Source of the DNA: Auanema rhodensis
Taxonomy: Eukaryota; Animalia; Nematoda
Direction: 5' to 3'
Length of the DNA: 64,000 bases
Assembly: GCA_964057225.1 (NCBI GenBank)
Contig: OZ059894.1
Location: forward strand, 9,734,001-9,798,000
Part shown: piece by piece, positions 5,301 to 23,192 of the stretch
Position numbering within the stretch: position 1 is the stretch's first letter
Layout: every line of letters starts with the position of its first letter
Translations under genes and position numbers: made by a program
The notes under the pieces: model-generated
Told to the model about the DNA's origin: nothing
What the model saw: the letters and a program-made list of their open reading frames with translations, nothing else
Databases searched by the model: none

Positions 5301-8300
5301 AATAATGCACGTTCGCCTTCTGTGATACTATATGATTTCTGGAGTGAAGTTACAAAATCTGGAGATGTGTATAAGCAACTACTAGATAATGAAGTTAAAG
5401 TATCATCTATAGTTGAAGCTTCTATAACGTAAAAATGAATTAAAGGATAGTTGTACATGTCACTTACCATCATCTTCATAAACTATTTGAGATACAATCA
5501 CTTCAGAATGCTCATGTTCAGTTTCACGATGAATATCAATTGTTATATTGATATCAGTTGTTAGGATATCTGTATTCTCACGATCGAATGTCAAGTATGT
5601 TGTTAGGCGACATCCACGAGCTTTTGGTATGACGATTTCCTTATTTTCACGAGAAACATCCTTTGTGAAACTTAAATCAACACAAATATTTTCGGATGTT
5701 TGTTTCTGAAGATCGACGCTATCTGTGTCATCTTCAATAATAGTTTGAGCGATGATAGTAGCATCAGTTGTGGTCGAAGCTTCAGTTTTCAAATCTTCGC
5801 TAAGAATTGGAGATGTCAGACAATCTTCGCGATGTTGAGCTTCAACAGGTGTTTCCTTCTCCGGGCTTTCTTCGATGCTTGACTTGGAATCATCAATTTC
5901 ATTCATTTGTCCAGATGAGCCAAAAAGTGATTTTTTGGCTTTCAGAATAGCTGATGTTTCCTCAATATTTGGAATATGAGCAGACACCGACTCGCTTTCA
6001 GCTGTAGATGTTTGCCAAGAAGTTGATTCGTTAATAGTCTCAGCCAGAAGTTTCTCGGTCATATCAATAGCAATAGCTTCAGCAGCTTTAAGAGCAAGTT
6101 CGTCTATTGCCATTTGATCAGGTTCAGATACAACTTCAAAGGTTGCAAAGCATTTATCGGAGTTATTATCAATCTGAATTAATTTTTTTTTTGCTTTTAT
6201 TCTTCTTCTGAATCTTTAAACCCTCTCTACTTACCTGAACATTCAATTCAGCTTCAGCTGTTTCTTCAACTACGATTGGATCATCATCTGCACTAAAAAC
6301 TTGTACAGTTGGAACTTCAAAGAGTTTCCGAGCTGGCTCGTGTTCCTTCAATGTTTAGTTTAACATCAGATTTTGATTATTTTTGATTATTTCTACCTCT
6401 GGGTCACTTTCTTCACATATTGCTGGAATACTTTCAAGTGTATTGATAGATATCCTATCAGCCATTTCCGTCTCAGCAACATCTTTAACGGATGGCATAG
6501 TTAAGGAAATATCAATTTCTGGTTCTTCAAAAATCATTTGACTGAACAGTTCACTGTCTGAAAACATTTCAAACAATTGCTCAGCCATTGCTCATCACTA
6601 TCTCGTTCTTACCAGACACTTTAACACGTGTAACTGCGGTATAGATTCCACCTACGACTACTCCATACTCGCCGGCATCACTAGTTTCGACGGGTACTAT
6701 ACTAAGAGCATGATGTCGTCCATCATCGGAATCTTCAAAGACATAGCGATTAGCTTCATCTTTGTTTTTCGTTCGAGGAATAGTTGTGTCGCGATCCTAT
6801 AAAGCGTTTTTCACTGTTTCATATGACCTTCCAGATATTTATTTTTCATTTTTGATCGAAGAGAAGCGGTTGTTCATCACCTGCTCTCTGCTCTTCCTGT
6901 TTTCAGACGCACTAAGCTGGTTGCCTACACTAGTTCTCTTACCTTTTTATCATATTTTATAATTTATTTTTATTTTTATTATAATTTTATTATATTTTAC
7001 CTTACGCCATTCGATAGACTTTTCATCGCTTACTGTTTCGCATTTAATAGTTGCAACAGCTCCAGCTGGTATACATGTTTCATCAATCTCTTCTCCACCT
7101 GAATCATTATTTATTTCGTTTTTTTCATTTTTAGTTTATGGCTTATGGCTTATTTTTAATTTTTTAATTTCTATATTTGTATATTGTGGATTCGACTCAA
7201 GCAACGACATATCAATTCAATCAGAAGTTCATTAATAATTTTCTTTTGTTGTTGTGTTTCGAAAAAAAAAATAAAAACAATCAAAATAACATGAGAGCAA
7301 AAAAAGAAACAAAGAGGAATGATAAGATATAATATATGAATTAATAACAATTTTTAAATTAAAAATATATAAATAATAATAAAAATAATAAATAGATCCG
7401 TAATAATAATAATAATAATATTATAAATTATATTTTAGTTAATTTCTGTTAGTTAAACTGAGAAAAAACTTAAAAAAATAAGGATAGGGAGAGCAAAAAG
7501 ATCATAATCTTCATAAAAAATTATAAATTTCATTTGCATAATGAGCTATTCGAGATTCGTTTCCGTTTCAAACCCTGATTTGATGTTGCCAAATCATTTA
7601 CTATCAGATGTGCAACTCGAAAAACGACATTAGAAATGGAAACAGAATAGATACCCGAATCAGAATTGCATGTATCATGTATAACAAGATAATGCTTTAA
7701 TCCGTTAACAACATGCTCAGATTTACCAAGATCATCAAAAGTTATTGGTTGGCCATCACGTAGCCAGATTAGTACACGTTTATAATCATTTTCTTCTAAT
7801 TCACAAGCTATTGTAGCTGTGCTTCCTGGCGGTACTAAGTATTCTTGAACATCATCCTCTTCGCTTTCCGTTCCAGAAGCCATGACAGTCAGTTCCTTTT
7901 CGTCAATTCGTTCTAAATCGTTTATCAGAGTTGTCACCGAGTAGAGAAAATAACAGAAACAACAAACAAACAAAGGACAAAATACTTGAAGCTCTGAGGT
8001 TCAAAAGCTTCGGTACTTGACATATCCAGGGAATGAATTCTCAAATTCATGCTCTGATCACATACACACATAACACAAATGATATGAAACATACCTTCAA
8101 CAACAAGAGTGATTGTGACATGTTGATCTCCTAAAACAGCATAGTATGTACCTTGATCTGCTAATGAAGTCTTTTCAATAAGTAATCGATTCCATCCATC
8201 TGACGTGCACAATATTCGTTTGCGTGTTCCTTGAAGTTTCAATGGCTTGCGATCCTTCAGCCACATGATAGCGTGACTGTCATATCCTTCAACAAGCTGT

Positions 8301-11300
8301 ATACCTAGTTCTGTTGGCTGACCATCCATTACGAACTGCGTTTGAGGTGGAGTCACAAAAATGGTCTGTACATCAGGATCCTCAACAACAAGATAGGCTA
8401 CAGGAAATATGTCATTGTTGACTTTCAAACTGTATAAATCATTATCATCAATCTCAACTACATTGATAATCAAGACTTCGAGTAAATCATGGCTTATTCG
8501 ATCGAATTTTCCTGGAACTCTTTCTAATGGCTGTTTTCCCTTGTACCAATCAATAATGCTATTAGGTGGAAGATAATTATTCAATTCACATGTTATAGTG
8601 GCTGTTGATCCAAGTTTGATTACATAACTTGGTATGTTAATGCTTCCAGAACTTAATGTATTTTCAATTTCTGAAATTGAATTTTGTGACTCCTTGAATG
8701 AGGCTTGTGATCGTAGTGACTTTTTCTCATCTGCTGTGGCTTCTGATACAGTTACATTGAAGTGAAGTGAGTTATCACAGCTTCTACTCATTTCACACTC
8801 ACGAACTGTCATGTTTGCTTCTCCCCATGGAATTTCTTCAAGAGAAGCATAGATTCCATCATGTAAGCTACGAGCAATTATAGAAACTGAGATGCCAGTC
8901 TTGTTATCTCCTCGTTCGTATTCATCGAATGAACTAGTTTCTGTGAATTCTTCTCTTTCCATAGGAATAGGTTCTAACGCTTCTGAATATTCCATATTCT
9001 CTAAGTTTGCCATTACTGTCAGTGATGTGAAATCTATTTGATCTTCAATAACCTTGATGGTTAAGCCCATTAACTCAGGTTCTTGAGTGATTTCGATGTC
9101 AAATGTGTCATCAGCAGCAACGTGAGCAGCAATACGTTGTCTGACATCTTGAGATAATGTGGCTATAAGACCACGTCTAGCTGGGATTCTAGAAAATTCG
9201 AAATCTTGTTCTATGTCGTCACGAGGCTGTTCAATCTCTGTGACTACTGAGTCGTCGCTGAGAATATCTGTTTCGCGCATCGTGTTAGCAGAGCTAAATG
9301 GTCGTTCCAGCTCATCTGTTTTAAGTGATGATCCCATCTGACTCAACTGAGTTTCATCGACAATATAATGAATAGTCTCTTCAGATTCTGGATCAGGATT
9401 TGAATCAGCTTCGCTTTTCTGTTTTAAAGTTTCTGTGCTTCGTTCCATAATAGTGGATAACGTAGTACTATTTTCACGTTTGATGGGCGTTGGGGGTAAT
9501 CTGTCTTCAGATCTTGAATCTAGATCAGATTCTTGAAGTACATAGTCATTGATAGGAAATTGAGCTGAAGTTGTATTGTTATCTTCAACCTCTTCATCAA
9601 TATCAACAGACTGAAGCTCAATATTAACATCGATATTCTCAACAGGTTGTTCTTCTATAACATTTTCCTTTACTGGTTTGAGAGAATGCTGACTGTTTAA
9701 GCTGAGATTTGAATGTAATTTAGCAGATTCATTCGGATTAGTATAGCGATTGAAGAATTGGATTGTTCCTTTTAGCATGCATGATGTATCCGTATCCGTA
9801 GCATAGTCGGATTCTTCACACAACATTTGAACGGAGCTTGTATCATCTGCTGGTACATAGCAATCTACGTTCATGTGATGACACATAGGCATTTCAGATT
9901 CAATTGACATGTCCATGGTCACAGCTCCTCCGTATGTCATAGATATCATTGAGAAATCCAGGTTAGTTGTTTCTTCAAAACAACGTTGTGGTTTTGGTGG
10001 ACTACTCTGCTTACTACTGTAAGCTTCTGAATGTTCTGTCATTTGGCAGATCATTGGCTCAACTGTTTCACACGAATTTCCAGTTGATTCATTCCTGTTG
10101 TTAACAATAATCATTGAACAATCAATGTTCGTGGTCGGTACTTCTTCAGGTGGTTCACCACTCAGAGAGCGCAGTTGCTCAAGTAATTCCGCTTCTGTTT
10201 GATCATTGTCTTCGCTGACGTACTCAGAATACGATGGAGTTGCGTCACGGTCTAAAATTGGAGTCTCAAACTGAGACAGATCTTTCATTTCAGGAATAGG
10301 TATCTGTGAAATTGTCTCTTCTGCTCGGTTAGCTTCTTCGGATTTCTTCATAAAAACATTATGACTGATGGTTTCTTCATGAACAGGTACTTCAGATCCT
10401 GAGACAACCTCTAAGATAACTCCTTGTTCAGAATCTGTAGGATAATCTGATTCTTGAACACTGGGAACTACAGGAGAAACATGAACAGCTGGAGAAATAG
10501 GAGCTAAGCTCGATGTCGTTGGTGATGTAATTTTAGGTTGTAGCTTAAGTTCTTCTGAAGCTACGTTTTGCTGAGCATTTCTTTCGCTTTCAAGTTTCTT
10601 CAATTTTTTCTTTTCAGCCTTAGCTTCAACATACTGTTGCAATATATTTTTTGTTTTCTCAGCCTTTTGCTGAATATCTGTGTCAGATATTAGTGGCTCT
10701 CTTTCAGCCGTTGTTTTACTTCTACTTCGTCTTCGTAATGGATTCGGGAAATTAAAGTTTCGAATCTTATCCAAAGCATTCTCAGTGAATTGTTTGAAAG
10801 CTTTAGAAGTTGATGTTCTCTGAGTAGAAGAATAGGATTCTAAATCACGAGACATACTCTGGCTATCCAACGACGTATGACGTTGGGATATTGGTCTCGG
10901 TGCGGAGGACTCCGTTTTGAGGTGCATGGTAGGATCATGAGAAGTATCACGGTGCCTTCTCGGAGGCGCAACAGGTTGTGCAATTCTCGATTGATGATAG
11001 TTAGGTAATGTAGAAGATCGGGAAGTATTTCTAGAGATACGTTCTGTGTCAATTGAAGCTTCAGATATCTGCTTAGCCTTCTGAAGAGCTTTAGATTCAA
11101 CTGGTTCTCGAGCATACGATGAACTAGTTGTCTCAATATATGGATCGTTTGACTTGTCACGTTTCTTTCTTGGAGGAGCAACTGGTGTTTGTATTTTTTC
11201 TTCTTCAATCACCCCAACAGAAGGAGAGCTCATCTTGGATTTTGTCATTCCAGCATCACTGAAGGATGTTCTTAACTCAGTTGAATATCTCCATGTATCA

Positions 11301-14300
11301 TCACTGACTGATCCACCTATAGATGCTTGAATAGTGCTTGATCGATCTGAAGATTTTCTTTTGAAGATCATAATACCTTCAATTTGTTCAGAAGCATCTG
11401 GATTTGATAGATTCACGTGAATATCAGTGTCTGAATCCGGGCACTTCTTTTGCTCCTTCAGTTTTTGACATTTTCTCTTCGATAAAGCCATGATGTTAAC
11501 TATGCTTGTTACATGAATTTTTACTTTTTCAAGTACATGCATGACAGCATCTGTTCCCTTTTTCGTCAATTTCTTCTTACAAAATCCCTTAATTGTCGAA
11601 ATTTCATTATTAATTTGAACAAAGATATCATGTAATTCCTGACGAACTTGAGCTGCTGATTTCGTTGGATTATGTGGTATGATGGATGATGTAGATTCAC
11701 TATTTATATGTTCATTTATCATATCTTCTAATGTTGTTAGTTGATCTCGTATATCAGTTGTTAAGGGTGTCATTCGGATAAGTTCAGCACTTGGAACTCT
11801 TTTTGTTTTTACTGGATTCTTCAAAACTGTTGTAGCTGATCCAGTTAAGGATGTAGACCCGTCTTGTGTGAGATCGGCTTCATTGATCTCACATACTTCA
11901 ACATCTTCCATCAGTGAATTCTCAATATCTGACAATTTCCGCTTTAAAATCTGAATAGGTGTTTTCATCAGCTGGGCATCTTCTGATCGTTGACTCGGAT
12001 TCAGAATCATATCAGCTAGGGTTGTTCTCATAAGTTCTTCACTAGCTTCTGCTTGTGCTTCTGTGATTGGACTGTGATGCACTAGCTGGTCAGACATTCG
12101 AAGTATAGCTTCTTCAATCTCTTTGGCATCATCATTCAATTTACTTGTACTCGAAGCTGGTGGTCGAACCTTCAAGTCATTCAATTGTTGTTCAACTTGT
12201 TTAGCAATTCGTTCGATTTCTTTCATTTTTTCAATGGGAATTACATTTGATTTTGAAGATTCGCCTTCTTTATCCTTTTCTGATCTTCCTCCTCCTGGAA
12301 CATATGGTTTTCGTTGACTACTGCTTCCAGAACTATCAGATTTTGTTTCTCCTAGAATACTCGATTTTGATGATTTTGCAGACTGTGGTGAAGAATCAGC
12401 ATTATCTATCGATGGTTGAGTTTCGTTCGTTTCCCTTAACATTCGAAGATCTCTCTCAATCTTCTCTAATTCTATCTGAGAAGGATCTGAAGTAGCTTCA
12501 CTCTCCAAGATTTCTTTCTTCTCATTTTCAGATGTTTTCGATAGATTTGATAACATTTCTTCGTCTTTTGTGGTAAAATTCATATTTTCTAATGATTTTC
12601 TCATATTAATTTCAATAATTTCTTGGTCATCTTTCATAAATGTATCAGTTTTGGATGATTGATCTGGTGACAATCTCTGTGAATCCTGAGTAAGTAATAC
12701 ATCTTCTGTCAGTTGTTCTGACTGTAATTCAGTCGGTTCTTCAGTTGGTTCTTTGGTCGGTTCTTCTATCAGTACTTCTGACTGTAATTCAGTCGATTCT
12801 TCCGTCGGTTTTTCAGTCGGTTCTTCAGTCAATTGTTCTGACTGATGTTCCATGCTATTAACAGAAGGTGGTAAAATAATTTTTTTTGCTGGTAAAGGAG
12901 TGTTAAACTCTAATGATGTTTCTAAAACTTTTTTGGTTGATTCAGTAGATGGATCAGGTTCAATTTCATTCACAAAAACTCCAATTTCTTGGCCTTTGTA
13001 ACTGATCTTTAGAGGCAATGTAAGAACACGAGGCTCATCTGATCTTCTTTCGTTCTCAATTTCTAATTCAACTACTTGTTCTTGCTTCAAAAGTTTGTTA
13101 ACTTCATCAGCAAACGGATCATTGAAATCCTTATTGAACTGGCTACTGTCATTCAATGGAGCAGTAGCTTCAAAGTTGATAGAATCAAATAACTTTACTT
13201 TATCCATATGGACAATACTGGCAGATGACTTGATATCAGTGTATGGATTCAAAAAGAAGGCTTCTGTACTGCTAGTACTGTTCAAAGTATCCGAAAGCCT
13301 TCTTCTTAAAGCTTCAGATATTGCTGGCTTTGGAGGTGGCACTGGTGGTATTTTCAATCGAGGAACTTCAAAATTAGCTTCAACTACATAATCTTGAACA
13401 AGCTCTGTCACTTTTACAGAAATTTCTCCTGTTTCGGGATACTTGTAGAAAGTGCTCGTCTCTTTCAAATCCTCATTGAAACGAGCAGTAGTTCGTAAAG
13501 CTGCAACAGGTGCAACAGGTGCAACATCCGGTATTACGGTAGCTTGTTGTTGTTGTTGTTGTTGTTGGATGTCAATGTCATGAACGGCATCCTGATTACT
13601 CTTACTACTTTGAACTTCATTAGCATATTGAATGATGTCATCAAGGTACGTAATAGCTTTGCTACTTATGTTGTTGGCTTCTTCATCATCAGAATCTGTA
13701 AAAAGAAAACAAAAGCTCCAACTAATCTTTTTCTACAATTCTCATGCGTGATGTGATATGTAATGTATGTAGAAGAAGAAGAAGCAGAAGATGAAGAAGC
13801 AGAATGTATCATAAAATCCTAGAAAGAGCGCGCCAAACAACACACAATAACAAAGCACAAAACACAAAACAAAACGTAATTTTCTCTACCGTATACGGTT
13901 AGAATGAGAAAAATGGGGAAGAATGTGGTTAGCAGAGCAGAAAGGTTGAGTATAATAATAGTCAGAATGACAGAAAATTATGAAAAACAAGCTAAATCAA
14001 TTGATCACATACATATTCATAAGATAAGATAATGATAATGATAATGAAAATAGATAAATTTAATTTTGAATATTGAAGATGAACTACTGTACTTATGATG
14101 ATAATCTAATTTCGGGGCTAATAAGGTAGTGGTAAGAGGTTACCAGATACGGAATTAGCTATCGACGTTTTATTTTGTGATTCACACTTTGAGATGCCGT
14201 TGCTTGACGTCGACTCCGAGTTTTTTTTTTTCAAAATAAAATGTTATTTCGTTCAAAAGTTCTCAGATACTTTTCACATATTTGTAGCCATTTTTTTGAA

Positions 14301-17300
14301 TTTTTCAAGTTGTAAAGGTAAAGGAACTTACTGAAAACTTTCAAAAAGCATTTGGTAGAAGCTGTTCCAGCGTCGTTCGTTGCGACACAACAGTATTCTC
14401 CTTCGTCTTCGATTAAAGCTTCGTTAATCCGCAAGATCGAAACTCCATCTTCGAATACAATACTATATTCTCTGAAAAACTTGGCAATGAGCAAAATGAA
14501 TGAAATTCAAGTGTGGCTTACATGTTCGGTTCAATGACATCACCATCTACTGTCCAGATGACATCTGGAGTTGGTGTACCACAGACAATGCATTTGAATT
14601 GAACTGGGTTTCCAACTATTGTCTTGCAATCTTCTAACTTTCGGAAAAATCTGCAGCAAAAGCCAAACATTTATGTGAATGGTGAGTGAAAAGCTTACTT
14701 AGGAGGTTGCAATCCATTTGTTATCGAAGATTCCGTAACGCTTTGCTCGCTAGACTCTCGAATTTCGATTTTCTGGGGGTTATGCGGTTCGATTTCGGGT
14801 AAACTATCTATGGGAAGGTTGACACTTGCTACGATCTCCACACTTTGATCAGGACATGTAGCATCTACTTCAACGAAAACAGCAACTACGTTCAAATTAT
14901 TTTCGTCAGAATATCGGGTTGGTCGTGACCATTTTTCTTCTCTCGTTTCCTGAAAATCAGAGAGAATATTCCAGCGTTTGTGATCAAATAATCTTACAGA
15001 AGCCTGTCGACTACCATTAAGTTGAGATACTGCAAGGTTAGCTTCATCTTCTAATTGGCTTTCATATTCAATAACTAGTTCTTGATGAGAAGCATCACCT
15101 TGCTTTACTAGGCTAACAGTTACATTTTCAAGCTGAAAGTCAAAATTTTCTCGTAAAATTAAAAAAAATAAAAACCTTTAACTTGCTAGCGGCTGCCGCT
15201 ACTTGTAATAGTTCAGGAATGATTTGTTCTGGAATAACGACTGTGGTTCCTTGAGTATTGTCTTCAACTGGTTGAACTACTTCTATATTGGCATTAGTAC
15301 TTTCTTCTTCGTTTACTAAGCGCTTGACCTGAAAATATTGGAAAAGTTTTAACAAAAATTTGAAGGAAACATACTTTTTTCAAGCTCCATTTCATAGCAT
15401 CTTGGAAATTTTTTGATACACCTTCTAAGACAACTATGCGATGCTCAGCTAAAGCCTTCTTAGAAGACGATGCTTGAACTACATGAGTTGCTTCAGATGA
15501 TGTTCCAGGCTTCTGTAATATAGTTTCGAGGTCGATGAACTTATGTTCAGTTGCTGTTGCATTGAAACGGTGTGTCAACTGCAGAGCCAATGGCTCGCTA
15601 ACAGTAACTACGTGGTTGAATTCCGTGTCGGGGTTTCGTACGTCTACAGTGATTACGGTATCAGCTTGGTGTTGTTCTTTAAGAGATAAAACAGTATTCA
15701 TGACCATATTCACAGCTTCTTGAGCTGAGAGATCTGGTGATGAAGCATACTTTAGTCGATCTTCGATTACTTTAATCTGAAATTCGTAATTATTAAGATT
15801 ACATAGAATTTTCAATAAGACGGACCTTTTCATCATATGGCATGACATGGCTTCCACTATCTTCGGTGTCACTTTTATTCAGGTGAACATCAAGTTTAGA
15901 AGATTCTGTGATTACTGGCTGTTGTTCCTTTTCCTTTACAGTTGGAGTTGAAAGAGTCATTGCTGCTTGACTCATAACACTCTCTGTAAAGGACTGAGCG
16001 AATTTCTCTGCTACAGCCTGAATTTCCTGCAAAAGAAGATGCGAAAGTTTATTTCTAATTTGGGTAACAACTCTACCTTATCGACAAGTTCTTTTGTTGG
16101 TGATGCTGCTTTATCTGGTTGCTGATTAATTATTTCAATTGGAGTTGTGATTTCAATTTGGTGAGTTTCTTCTGATACGTTTGGCAAATCTAATGAATTT
16201 TCAATATGTGATTGGGCTTCAATGATGTCTTGTGGTTTTGACAATGTTTCTTCCTGAACTGCAATAGGAAGTTGTCTCAAATCGCTTTCACTCAATTCAT
16301 CCAAGACAGTTGTAACAATGGATTGAGCTACTTTTTCTGCGGAAGTAGATTCAGATGGTGTCTGAGTAGAAGGAAGAACAGAAGTTATAGTTATTTCAGC
16401 AACTTCCTCCTTAACTTCTTCCTTCTCAGTTGGAGCATGTTCTTCTGGTAAAATTAGCTTAGGAACAACTTGCTCAACTTGTTCAACAGCTTTATTGGAA
16501 AGGGAATCGGGAGCTTGCTCATTGACCTGAATTGCTGCATTTTCAAGTTCAAGAGCGCTTGATTCGCTAGGATCTTGTTTAGCTGTTTCATATGAAGCAG
16601 TAGTCGATTCATCAACTTTGCTTGAATCTTCTCGTTCACTTCGTGCTGTAAGAGGTAGAACGATACTAGCAGACTGACTATCTCTTCGTTTTTCGAAAAT
16701 GTTCACTTTATGTTCAGTGCTATCCTCATTGTTATGAGCAAATACATTAGTAATAACCTGAAATAAGTTATGAAATATAGTAGAAAACACATTTTCAAAC
16801 CTTTTCATCGGCTTCTTGTTTATCATAATTGGCTAAAGAGAATCGAATGTTCATGTCTGCGGCACGAGGTAAAACTCTTAATTTGCTTGAAAAAACTTTA
16901 GTTCCATGAATGTTTGTTGCATAACAGTAATATGTTCCTTCTGCTTCAAGCTTTAAGTTTTTCATGTTTAACGAAGCTGTTCCTTTTTCGTATGACATGC
17001 TTAAATCTCTGAAAAATTATTGATTTTTATTGAAAAATAAGATGAAAACTCGAATTCTTACTCTGAAATTTTGATTTTCTGATCGTTGAACTTCCATTCT
17101 ACAAATGGTGTTGGATACCCACCAACCGTAGTACTGATGCGAATAGTTCCTCCTTCTGTAGCCTCATACTCTTCAACAGATGTATCGAAGCGTGGTAGTC
17201 CTTCCTGCTCAGGAACCGATTTTACTTCTTCATCCTTCAACAGAGAAAGAAAGATTAAATTGGAAGAAGAGTTAACACTAACCTCAGAAATATCATCGGC

Positions 17301-20300: not shown

Positions 20301-22739
20301 CACAGTTTCGAATGAAGTTGTAGATGGAATCGACTGACTATCATCAAGCATTTCCCAATCGCTATCAGGAGCACTTGTGACAGTAACAGCTGATTCCAAA
20401 ACTTCTGGAGCTGCTGGAGTAGGTGTAATACGAATATCCGAATGAATTTCTTCAACAGTTTCCGTAACAATATGAGTTACACGAGTAATCAGAGTATCAC
20501 GTCCAACATCATTAAGAGCAACAACATTGTATTTGCCCTGTTTAACTGGTGGATTGACGACAAGTGTTGAGCGATTCTGCTCATTCAGAAGTGTGACATT
20601 CTTTGATTGTTTCACCTCAAAACCGTTCACATCCCATTTGAAATCCGCAGTTGGAATGGAACTCACATCAACCGATAAAACTAGCTTTTCATCAGGTCGA
20701 ACAGTGATTGTCTCAGGTAATTGGGTGAGAAACTTTGGTGGATGCGGAAGATATTTTGCTCCATCGCTTTTTGTCTTGTGCATTGATCGTGGAATCCGTT
20801 GCGACGCATTTGTTGGTACTTCTGAAAACACATTAGTTCACACGAGATTGTAAGTGTGGATAGTTGTCCTGTTGTTTAAAGAGGGGGAAGAAAGGGAGAA
20901 TAAGGGAAAATAAACAAAATTGCAAATAAAATCGAAGCAAAAAAAAATTCAAAAAAGTTCTAATAAAGCCAAGCCTATCTCTTAAGCTGTTAAGTTAAAT
21001 ATCTTATAAAGCATTCTGTAAACAAGCTTTCTACAGCACTTCATAGCAAAACTACAGCAGTACAACTAAGCTAAAAAGCAATAAAAGGCAAAAAAGGGTT
21101 AGATAAGCTTTTGGGAATTGAATATAACAAGTTATTTTTCAAAATGAAAATCAAAAAATTACCTGAACGATGAAGATTACTTAAAGTTCTTTCTGGTGAT
21201 TTAGATATTTCGAAGTGGCGTTCAAGATGTCTGACACCTCGAGGAACACTACTAGATCTTTGAGTATAGTTTACTTCATAAACACTAGTAGACTATAAAA
21301 TATAAGATTGAAATTTGAAATTATTATGGTTACTGCTACCTGATGAGTTGAAATTGGCTGATCTCCATTCTGGGCTTGACCAGTTTGATTGCTTAATGTC
21401 ATAACAGCACGAGACAAGTGCTCTCCAGGAGCAACGGGAGGTCTCATCTGCTTTGAAGGATTTGCTGAAATTCATTGAGATAAAATTACAATTTCTAAAA
21501 GATGCTCATGTTTTACCTTGATAAATCTCAATAAATCCTGAACTCATCGCTGATCCATGTACGTTGGATGCTACAACCTTGTATTCACCAGAAGTAGGAA
21601 TATGGAATCGAGCTACACAACGATTCTCTGCGGGGTAGAATATATCCACAACATTACTATTTTCCCGGAATTCTTTGCCATTCACAAACCATGCAAATCT
21701 ATAATTGGTTGATTGGAAAAGCTTGTCATTGAAGTTTTCTTACCGAGCTGGCGGATTAGCATCAACAACTACATCTAATACTGCTTCTTGACCAGGTTGT
21801 ACTGTCAAGTTGGGAACTTGATTGATAAACCTGGGAGCTAAATTGTGTGTAACTGACGCACTTCGAGATCGTTTAACTTCTGCTTGATCAGAAGATACAC
21901 TCCAATCTTCATAACGATGTTCAACTAGAAAAAACAATGAATTATACAGAAATTCCTTGAATATAACTTACAGTTAACAGTAATATATCCATAACTGGTG
22001 CTGCATCCAGCAGGATTTCTTGCTGTACACTTATAAACTCCTTGTTCAGGATGTGTAACTGTTAAAGTTGTAATATTCAATCCATGTCGAACTTGAAAAC
22101 GTCTTCTATCCTATAAGTAATGAGATTAATATGGATTTTCATGCTCTCTTGTTAGTTCAGGAAAAAGGATGAATAAGGTGTGTTTTTCCTTGAGTTTCAA
22201 GTCAAGCTACTTACCTGTTGAACTGGTTTATCATTACAAAACCATTCAAATATTGCTGGAGGATCTGACGCTACTTCGACAACGAGTGTTGGTGTATCAG
22301 AAGATAATACTCTATATGCTTTAATTACCTGAAAAATAAAAAAAATGCTTTGAGGTTCAAGTTTTAATTCAAGTTTACTTGAACAAATTTTGGTGGAGCA
22401 GCTGCTACAAAACTTGTAATTTCACTACTCCAATGTTCTTCGGTAAATGACTGTGATTGTGTGCCCGAAGATCGTATAAGATGTGTTTCCGCAACTGTAG
22501 CACTACCCGAACGGAATACAGCTTCTCTATCTGTGAGTACAATATACGTAGTTAGAATCATATAATCAATTCACGGCATTACCTGTTGCATAAGCTGTAG
22601 AAGGACTCGTCGGAGCTGTAACAACACGTCGTGGTGATGGCTGACCTTCCATTAACCATTCTGTGTTTGTGTCAACTCCTAGTTGTTGAGAAGTTTCATT
22701 ACGAGATTGACGAGGTTGATTTGAATCATCTCTATCCAT
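1..22739 (-). CDS. ttn-1: Titin (giant multi-Ig muscle protein), multi-exon, 3' part beyond window start
   Basis: The spliced N-terminus MDRDDSNQ...PTSPSTAYATDREAVFRSGSATVAETHLIRSSGTQSQSFTEEHWSSEITSFVAAAPPKFVQ closely matches the C. elegans TTN-1 N-terminus as I recall it. About 21 I-set Ig domains (P-x-F...C...P-x-P...W...D-x-G-x-Y-x-C-x-A-x-N-x-x-G) are spread over GT-AG exons, followed by low-complexity elastic-type repeats. The ATG at 22739 is 39 nt after an acceptor (ttttaag) that is in frame, so an upstream coding exon is possible. Confidence 0.9.
7530..7912 (-). CDS. ttn-1: Alternative terminal exon of ttn-1 (one Ig domain plus basic tail, stop codon)
   Basis: The acceptor gatttag|AA CGA (phase 1) matches the phase-1 donor at 8095. 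It encodes ERIDEKEL...PPGSTATIACELE...WLRDG...DSGIYSV...KRKRISNSSLCK* (TGA 7532-7530), followed by ~415 nt of U-rich sequence and AATAAA at 7115-7110. Confidence 0.8.
8095..13695 (-). CDS. ttn-1: ttn-1 giant exon (5601 nt, 1867 codons): disordered/coiled-coil region plus two C-terminal Ig domains
   Basis: Acceptor ttttacag ending at 13696, donor GAAG|GTATG at 8095/8094. It largely overlaps the 1844-aa ORF and extends it upstream with SDDEEANNISSK...QQQQQQQ. Ig motifs are GSTATITCEL...DWYKG and PTELGIQL...MWLKD...DQGTYYA. Confidence 0.88.
12706..12846 (-). repeat. 60-bp coding repeat (QSEQLTEEPTEKPTEESTEL-like, ~2.4 copies)
   Basis: The protein reads EQLTEEPTEKPTEESTELQSEVLIEEPTKEPTEEPTELQSEQLTE; actgtaattcagtcg occurs at 12721 and 12781. 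Confidence 0.8.
18801..20821 (-). CDS. ttn-1: ttn-1 2-kb exon with five Ig domains
   Basis: ORF 18735..20831 has repeated PPKF/PPVF...W...N..G Ig motifs. The acceptor ttttcag ends at 20822 and the donor gtgagt is near 18800. Confidence 0.88.
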
Positions 22740-23192
22740 GTCTAAGTCCTTACGGACACTCGTGGTGGTAACCCGCTTCTTAAAAGATTTTTATTGAAAA
22801 AACAAAAATCGATAATAGCATATTAACTAAGAGAAAAGGAACAATAGATCATAAACTACTATTATATGGATATTTTAAAAAGTAAAAAATGTGAATGGGA
22901 TGACATCATAAGGTGGAGGTAAGACGGTAAAAAATGAAAATGATTTTGTTCCATTTTTTTGCTGTTTTCTATGTTTAAAACTTTTTCCAACTTATTACAG
23001 CTTGAGAGCATATAATTTAGTTTTAATCGCATATACAATATGGGATGTTGTTAAACATTTCCTCTAATTTTTGGATATATTGATGATTTTATGGCCTATC
23101 ACAGTTTCAAATTGTTGTTAGGGATAACAAGTAGGCAAAAACGTGTGCTGCTCCCTCATTTATCAGCCTCAGTGACAACGGTCAGGTCTCAG

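Follow-up and report, generated by a model that had tools for sequence, protein, structure and literature searches.

Exon arrangement of the titin locus

The window, a stretch of 64,000 nt from Auanema rhodensis, carries on its minus strand a titin gene transcribed from about 22.7 kb downward, with a candidate start ATG near 22739 (−), in the region to which the N-terminus of C. elegans TTN-1 maps (about 22364–22760). The gene spans just about 1–22.7 kb of the window, and the remaining 41 kb hold something else. Behind a large coding exon that ends at 8095 lie two exons that both begin in phase 1: exon A, which contains a stop codon and in which a short form of the protein would end, and exon B, through which a long form would run on. 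The features of this region are given below.

8095–8695, minus strand: 3' end of the big upstream coding exon, with its last two Ig domains (site reading and Pfam)
7913–8094, minus strand: intron from the shared donor to exon A, 182 nt, open in frame for 54 codons (sequence and ORF list)
7530–7912, minus strand: exon A, with a linker, one I-set Ig, a conserved basic tail and the stop at 7532–7530 (translation, Pfam and alignment)
7572–7574, minus strand: GGT codon, G/GTTTGA, the only phase-1 GT near the tail as a possible internal donor; weak and not conserved
7533–7571, minus strand: C-terminal tail LKRKRISNSSLCK (alignment of 24 sequences)
7099–7529, minus strand: AT-rich interval of 431 nt, putative short-form 3' UTR that also falls within the long-form intron
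7228–7233, minus strand: AATGAA, a poly(A)-signal variant and candidate proximal signal, 24 nt upstream of the 13-mer (sequence only)
7197–7209, minus strand: conserved non-coding 13-mer TGTCGTTGCTTGA (comparison of five rhabditid species)
7110–7115, minus strand: AATAAA, the sole canonical copy in the interval, its last base 9 nt before the exon-B acceptor AG
7001–7098, minus strand: exon B, coding for the first half of the following Ig, with phase-1 entry, no in-frame ATG and a donor after 7001 (translation)
6613–6796, minus strand: exon B2, second half of exon B's Ig, ending in phase 1 (translation and a weak Pfam match to the C-terminal half of I-set)

The shared donor reads GTT GTT GAA G/gtatgt (a slash marks the splice boundary), with 8095 as the final exon base, the GT at 8094–8093 and phase 1. 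An ORF of 1844 aa (7934..13468) reads ...TITLVVEG into the intron, which is consistent with a donor at 8095, a site that this ORF overshoots by 54 codons. Pfam places two Igs at the end of the upstream exon, within its last 200 codons; the position and phase of the donor behind it are kept in Haemonchus placei, Necator americanus, Heligmosomoides polygyrus and C. elegans. Acceptor A, gatttag/AACGAATT, is the first AG beyond a long pyrimidine-rich tract and also lies in phase 1, with the AG at 7914–7913 and 7912 as the first exon base. From there, exon A runs for 127 codons, beginning with the split codon G+AA (E) and continuing RIDEKELTV...PPGSTATIACELE...KRKRISNSSLCK to the stop. Its domain was detected by Pfam as Ig_3/I-set, and its best matches among solved structures in the PDB are ordinary sarcomeric Igs, those of cMyBP-C (the best match) and of titin. 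A search of Rfam over positions 6000–9000 of the window gave no match.

Acceptor B reads gattcag/GTGGAGAA, with the AG at 7100–7099 and 7098 as the first exon base, and stops occur in every frame directly upstream of it. Exon B opens with the split codon G+GT (G) followed by GEEIDETCIPAGAVATIKCETVSDEKSIEWRK, and its protein aligns at 58–61% over 31 aa with those of three strongylids. In the six species that were read, exon B starts in phase 1, matching the donor at 8095, and lacks an in-frame ATG, so that its translation needs a splice to an upstream phase-1 donor. These readings reproduce in full the coordinates and peptides that an earlier sequence-only reading of this DNA had given for the donor at 8095 and for the acceptors at 7912 and 7098. 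The order of upstream Ig, stop-containing Ig exon and next Ig exon, together with the phases, recurs in H. placei, N. americanus and H. polygyrus, and also in a C. elegans-like contig and further nematode loci. Because the same order and phases recur in this way, sequence comparison confirms that the stop-containing Ig exon is genuine and that the arrangement is orderly far beyond chance.

The interval between the stop of exon A and exon B measures 431 nt in the window; among rhabditid relatives its length ranges from 151 to 508 nt, and in the filarial-like locus L004 it reaches about 2 kb. In the window, the putative 3' UTR is filled with simple AT repeats, among them an ATT trinucleotide run at 7395–7425 (−). 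Five species have an AATAAA in this interval; it starts 17–65 nt before the first base of exon B (29–65 nt in H. placei, Necator, H. polygyrus and C. elegans), and one relative (L009) has variant poly(A) signals only. The conserved 13-mer stands 68–111 nt from the exon-B acceptor and at a variable 84–416 nt from the stop in five species, so that a role in 3'-end formation or in splice regulation is conceivable. As TGYYGTTGCTYGA, it also occurs at 6468–6480 of the related locus L003 and at 15274–15286 of L009, and L001 and L002 have near-matches. A first exon that begins at the ATG within the 13-mer was considered as an alternative and rejected, being out of phase with exon B. The candidate poly(A) site would lie near 7095 or, since AATGAA stands 24 nt upstream of the 13-mer, alternatively at a proximal position near 7210.

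Conservation of exon A and its C-terminal tail

With exon A alone as query, 23 short database proteins were retrieved at 49–78% identity, among them those of H. placei, N. americanus and H. polygyrus. The alignment shows that the Ig core, the tail and the position of the stop are kept, the stop shifting by a few codons at most. Across the exon A codons of seven species, non-synonymous divergence (pN 0.05–0.33) lies far below the saturated synonymous divergence (pS 0.66–1.0) in all pairs, from which it follows, as far as codon substitution can tell, that exon A is translated and under strong purifying selection. A profile search for exon A, run without length limits, returned numerous gene models from nematodes with exactly this exon as their last, including the following.

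Gnathostoma spinigerum: model of 4286 aa ending at exon A
Steinernema hermaphroditum: model of 3520 aa ending at exon A
Parascaris: 'Titin' of 2981 aa ending at exon A
Acanthocheilonema: model of 4183 aa ending at exon A
Panagrellus: model of 3580 aa ending at exon A
S. carpocapsae, Dictyocaulus, Ditylenchus, Caenorhabditis japonica and C. nigoni: further models ending at exon A

As these models come from many nematodes, the exon is, by the evidence of gene models, at least as old as rhabditid clades III–V. In the relative L010 (GCA_958295435.1, about 10300–10602), an extra intron apparently splits the terminal Ig exon, the upstream Ig half being non-contiguous with the half encoding EHVINGCKHYL.... 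A loss of the intron before the terminal exon was considered for L009 and ruled out, this intron being merely open in frame; at about 14400–14560 it is fully open, so that ORF calling yields a single frame of 1729 aa across both exons.

The tail of exon A ends KRKRISNSSLCK in the window, immediately before the stop. Across the 24 aligned sequences, K117 and I119 are invariant, and R118, S120, S123 and L124 are conserved at ≥90%. The sequence-only reading had described the KRKR in this tail as similar to a nuclear localisation signal. The motif is indeed present in the window and in clade V relatives, but filarial and other nematodes have YTKR, HTKR or PMKR in its place, and only the K-R followed by I-S is conserved across nematodes. 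Beyond clade V, K-R-I-S and S-L are kept and the first two basic residues are replaced, so that the conserved feature of the tail does not, on the aligned residues, look like a classical NLS, and the interpretation of KRKR as an NLS is weak. A basophilic-kinase site of the type K/R-K/R-x-S, or a docking motif, would fit the conserved pattern better. Cardiac MyBP-C carries an R-R-I-S regulatory site. No paper naming a function for the exon A tail was found within the literature searched. For C. elegans TTN-1 a nuclear-envelope location has been reported, and for novex-3 one in the nuclei of cardiomyocytes (PMC6098106), so that nuclear roles are conceivable.

At the nucleotide level, CGT followed by AT is found at the Arg codon of the tail in L004 (6203–6232), L001 (647–676) and L008 (14909–14941), vs the corresponding stretch at 7533–7556 of the window. 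A nucleotide-level constraint on this codon was considered and dropped: CGT occupies the column in 6 of 8 cases, which is not significant because CGT is the commonest Arg codon in exon A (20 of 46). Ascarid and filarial models exit exon A by differing cryptic donors.

Proposed short and long forms of titin and the rival readings

The primary papers on ttn-1 isoforms are Flaherty 2002 and Forbes 2010, the former reportedly describing products of 2.2 MDa, 1.2 MDa and 301 kDa, the smallest of which may correspond to the 2789-aa C. elegans isoform described below. The sequence-only reading had pointed to the annotated C. elegans ttn-1 isoforms as the comparison to make, and two curated products there prove to end in the orthologous exon. 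Isoform c (UniProt G4SLH0-5, NP_001024200.1, 'Isoform c of Titin homolog', 3215 aa, computed 358 kDa) and NP_001346724.1 ('Titin homolog', 2789 aa, computed 311 kDa) both terminate in ...ITLVVEERIEEKEV...ALKRKRISNNSLHN, encoded by the orthologous exon after the orthologous junction, and isoform c is collinear with the window in ordered tblastn HSPs, the first beginning at residue 41 (22534) and the last reaching residue 3213 (7539). The terminal exon of these two products is 71% identical to exon A and follows a phase-1 junction after ...TLVVE, the tail KRKRISN.SL and the stop position are the same, and the next genomic exon is again a split Ig. In the C. elegans-like contig, the donor GAAG/gtaaat, a terminal exon with a stop and 265 nt of non-coding sequence with AATAAA are followed by tttttag and a phase-1 exon encoding ...IIPRGVVATIQCQT.... 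The two species differ in the big exon (about 1,790 codons in the window, about 1,265 aligned residues in C. elegans), in the intron before exon A (182 nt against about 581 nt), in the 3' interval (431 nt against 265 nt) and in the last residues of the tail, which are CK in the window and HN in C. elegans. For the long form, whose C. elegans counterpart is of the 18,000-residue class, the support is indirect and consists of the phase match, the missing ATG and the conservation of exon B together with the curation of ttn-1 as one gene. In the literature, ttn-1 is one gene, with nine isoforms in UniProt (PMC5290486) or at least six isoforms (PMC2851571).

Taken with the orthology, these features suggest that the window probably holds the ttn-1 orthologue with an alternative-last-exon switch between a short and a long titin. 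Site positions, phases, conservation and orthology are seen directly in the sequences, and from them we infer that A. rhodensis uses both junctions, as well as the position of its poly(A) site. For the short fate, 8095 would be spliced to 7912, followed by cleavage and polyadenylation somewhere in 7529–7099, to give a product of about 3,800–4,400 residues with one extra Ig and the tail ...KRKRISNSSLCK. For the long fate, the terminal exon and its 3' UTR would be skipped inside an intron of 996 nt (8094–7099), with 8095 joined to 7098, and the frame would stay open through more Igs and on into the spring region, upstream of which the ORF map places exon A. Splicing would thus stand in competition with polyadenylation. 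The sequence-only reading had proposed one titin gene that ends in, or skips, a stop-containing Ig exon, a proposal to which the curated C. elegans ttn-1 products lend support, since they end in the orthologous exon. That reading attributed the choice to competing 3' splice sites; two phase-1 acceptors are in fact present, but the short form would also require cleavage and polyadenylation before 7098. Its size estimate of 4,000–4,200 aa is about right, the minus-strand ORFs between 22.7 and 7.53 kb summing to about 3,800–4,400 aa, a range because these are rough sums. Judged by its sequence, the feature was correctly read and is ordinary for nematode titin, and the mechanism is one that is already known.

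Automated annotations often divide the locus differently, in a manner that would fit two genes: an N-terminal titin-like gene that always ends at exon A and a spring/kinase gene that begins at or after 7098, for example through trans-splicing in an operon-like arrangement. Many of them split at exon A, as in Necator (KI660196.1, 1–20404), where four models break on both sides of it, and models of Steinernema, Gnathostoma, C. nigoni and C. japonica end there. Nematode operon junctions are tightly packed, and the placement of AATAAA beside an acceptor, here ending 9 nt before that at 7098, recalls them. The first exon of such a downstream gene would, however, be one whose phase 1 matches the donor at 8095 in all six species read, which has no in-frame ATG and stops in all frames just upstream of its acceptor, and which encodes only the first conserved strands of an Ig whose second half lies in the next exon; a mini first exon begun at the 13-mer ATG would be out of phase. 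Together with the C. elegans curation, which lists the short forms as isoforms under a single gene, the phase match and the missing ATG make two genes quite unlikely.

A further arrangement is raised by Brugia malayi 'Bm6219, isoform k' (5798 aa, WormBase-named) and by Elaeophora, both of which join ...TKR to exon B. This TKR junction corresponds to a phase-1 GT in the Arg codon (AAAC/GTAT), present in six of nine species, and models of Toxocara, Loa, Dirofilaria and C. auriculariae also have exon A internal. Exon A would accordingly be a composite exon, most of which the long form keeps before exiting via a 5' splice site ahead of the tail, whereas the short form leaves that donor unused and is then polyadenylated, like the IgM secreted/membrane switch. 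We regard this as very unlikely in A. rhodensis, for the Arg codon is CGA in the window, CGA in L009 and CGC in L010, which leaves no GT, and the G/GTTTGA at 7574/7573 is a weak site without conservation. Annotations moreover disagree on where the internal junctions lie, and one H. contortus model cuts mid-Ig (...GSTATIA/SEEPTEE...), inconsistencies that indicate predictor artefacts. A further protein search returned mostly vertebrate obscurins and nematode models with inconsistent junctions. A third alternative, in which exon A is an Ig exon in decay or out of use and is not expressed, appears extremely unlikely: the exon has been retained over clades III–V together with its tail and the position of its stop, despite saturated synonymous change, and it forms the curated C-terminus of C. 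elegans isoforms.

For the alternative-last-exon switch in a single ttn-1 orthologue, a more specific form can be conceived from the closeness of AATAAA to the acceptor and the conserved 13-mer, namely direct competition for one site. The short-form poly(A) signal and the long-form 3' splice site would then share one stretch of RNA, titin length would depend on whether the cleavage/polyadenylation machinery or U2AF occupies that site, each sterically excluding the other, and a factor binding the conserved 13-mer would tune the competition. This remains a speculative refinement, and we consider it unlikely.

Other short titins and the meaning of the proposed switch

Novex-3 is a short splice variant of titin (PMC6098106), and the sequence-only reading had called the short form of this locus novex-3-like. 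The likeness is that one titin gene has, ahead of its elastic region, an alternative exon carrying a stop and a poly(A) site, and that the product is an N-terminal titin without the spring and the kinase. Novex-3 uses a very large exon with unique sequence of its own, whereas exon A here has 127 codons and encodes a single Ig. For novex-3 a nuclear location has been documented; for the A. rhodensis form it would be a conjecture. The comparison is made for an analogous mechanism and not as one of homology. In Drosophila, Kettin was described as a short Sls isoform whose protein ends after Ig35 through use of an alternative poly(A) site, although newer data revise the use of this site in flight muscle (PMC9886278). 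Sallimus/Kettin resembles the nematode short form in ending before the spring, but belongs to another gene lineage and uses another site. The nematode switch is, by comparison of these systems, best regarded as analogous to novex-3 and Kettin rather than homologous with them.

For annotation, these observations supply a rule. Nematode titin is often miscut into separate genes at exon A or forced through it by cryptic donors, and recognising a conserved alternative terminal exon would fix both errors. For the biology of the family, a spring-less, kinase-less titin of about 3,000–4,300 residues with a conserved tail appears to have been kept in rhabditid nematodes, parasites included, and the retention of the short form and its tail across this group argues for a distinct function of the short form.
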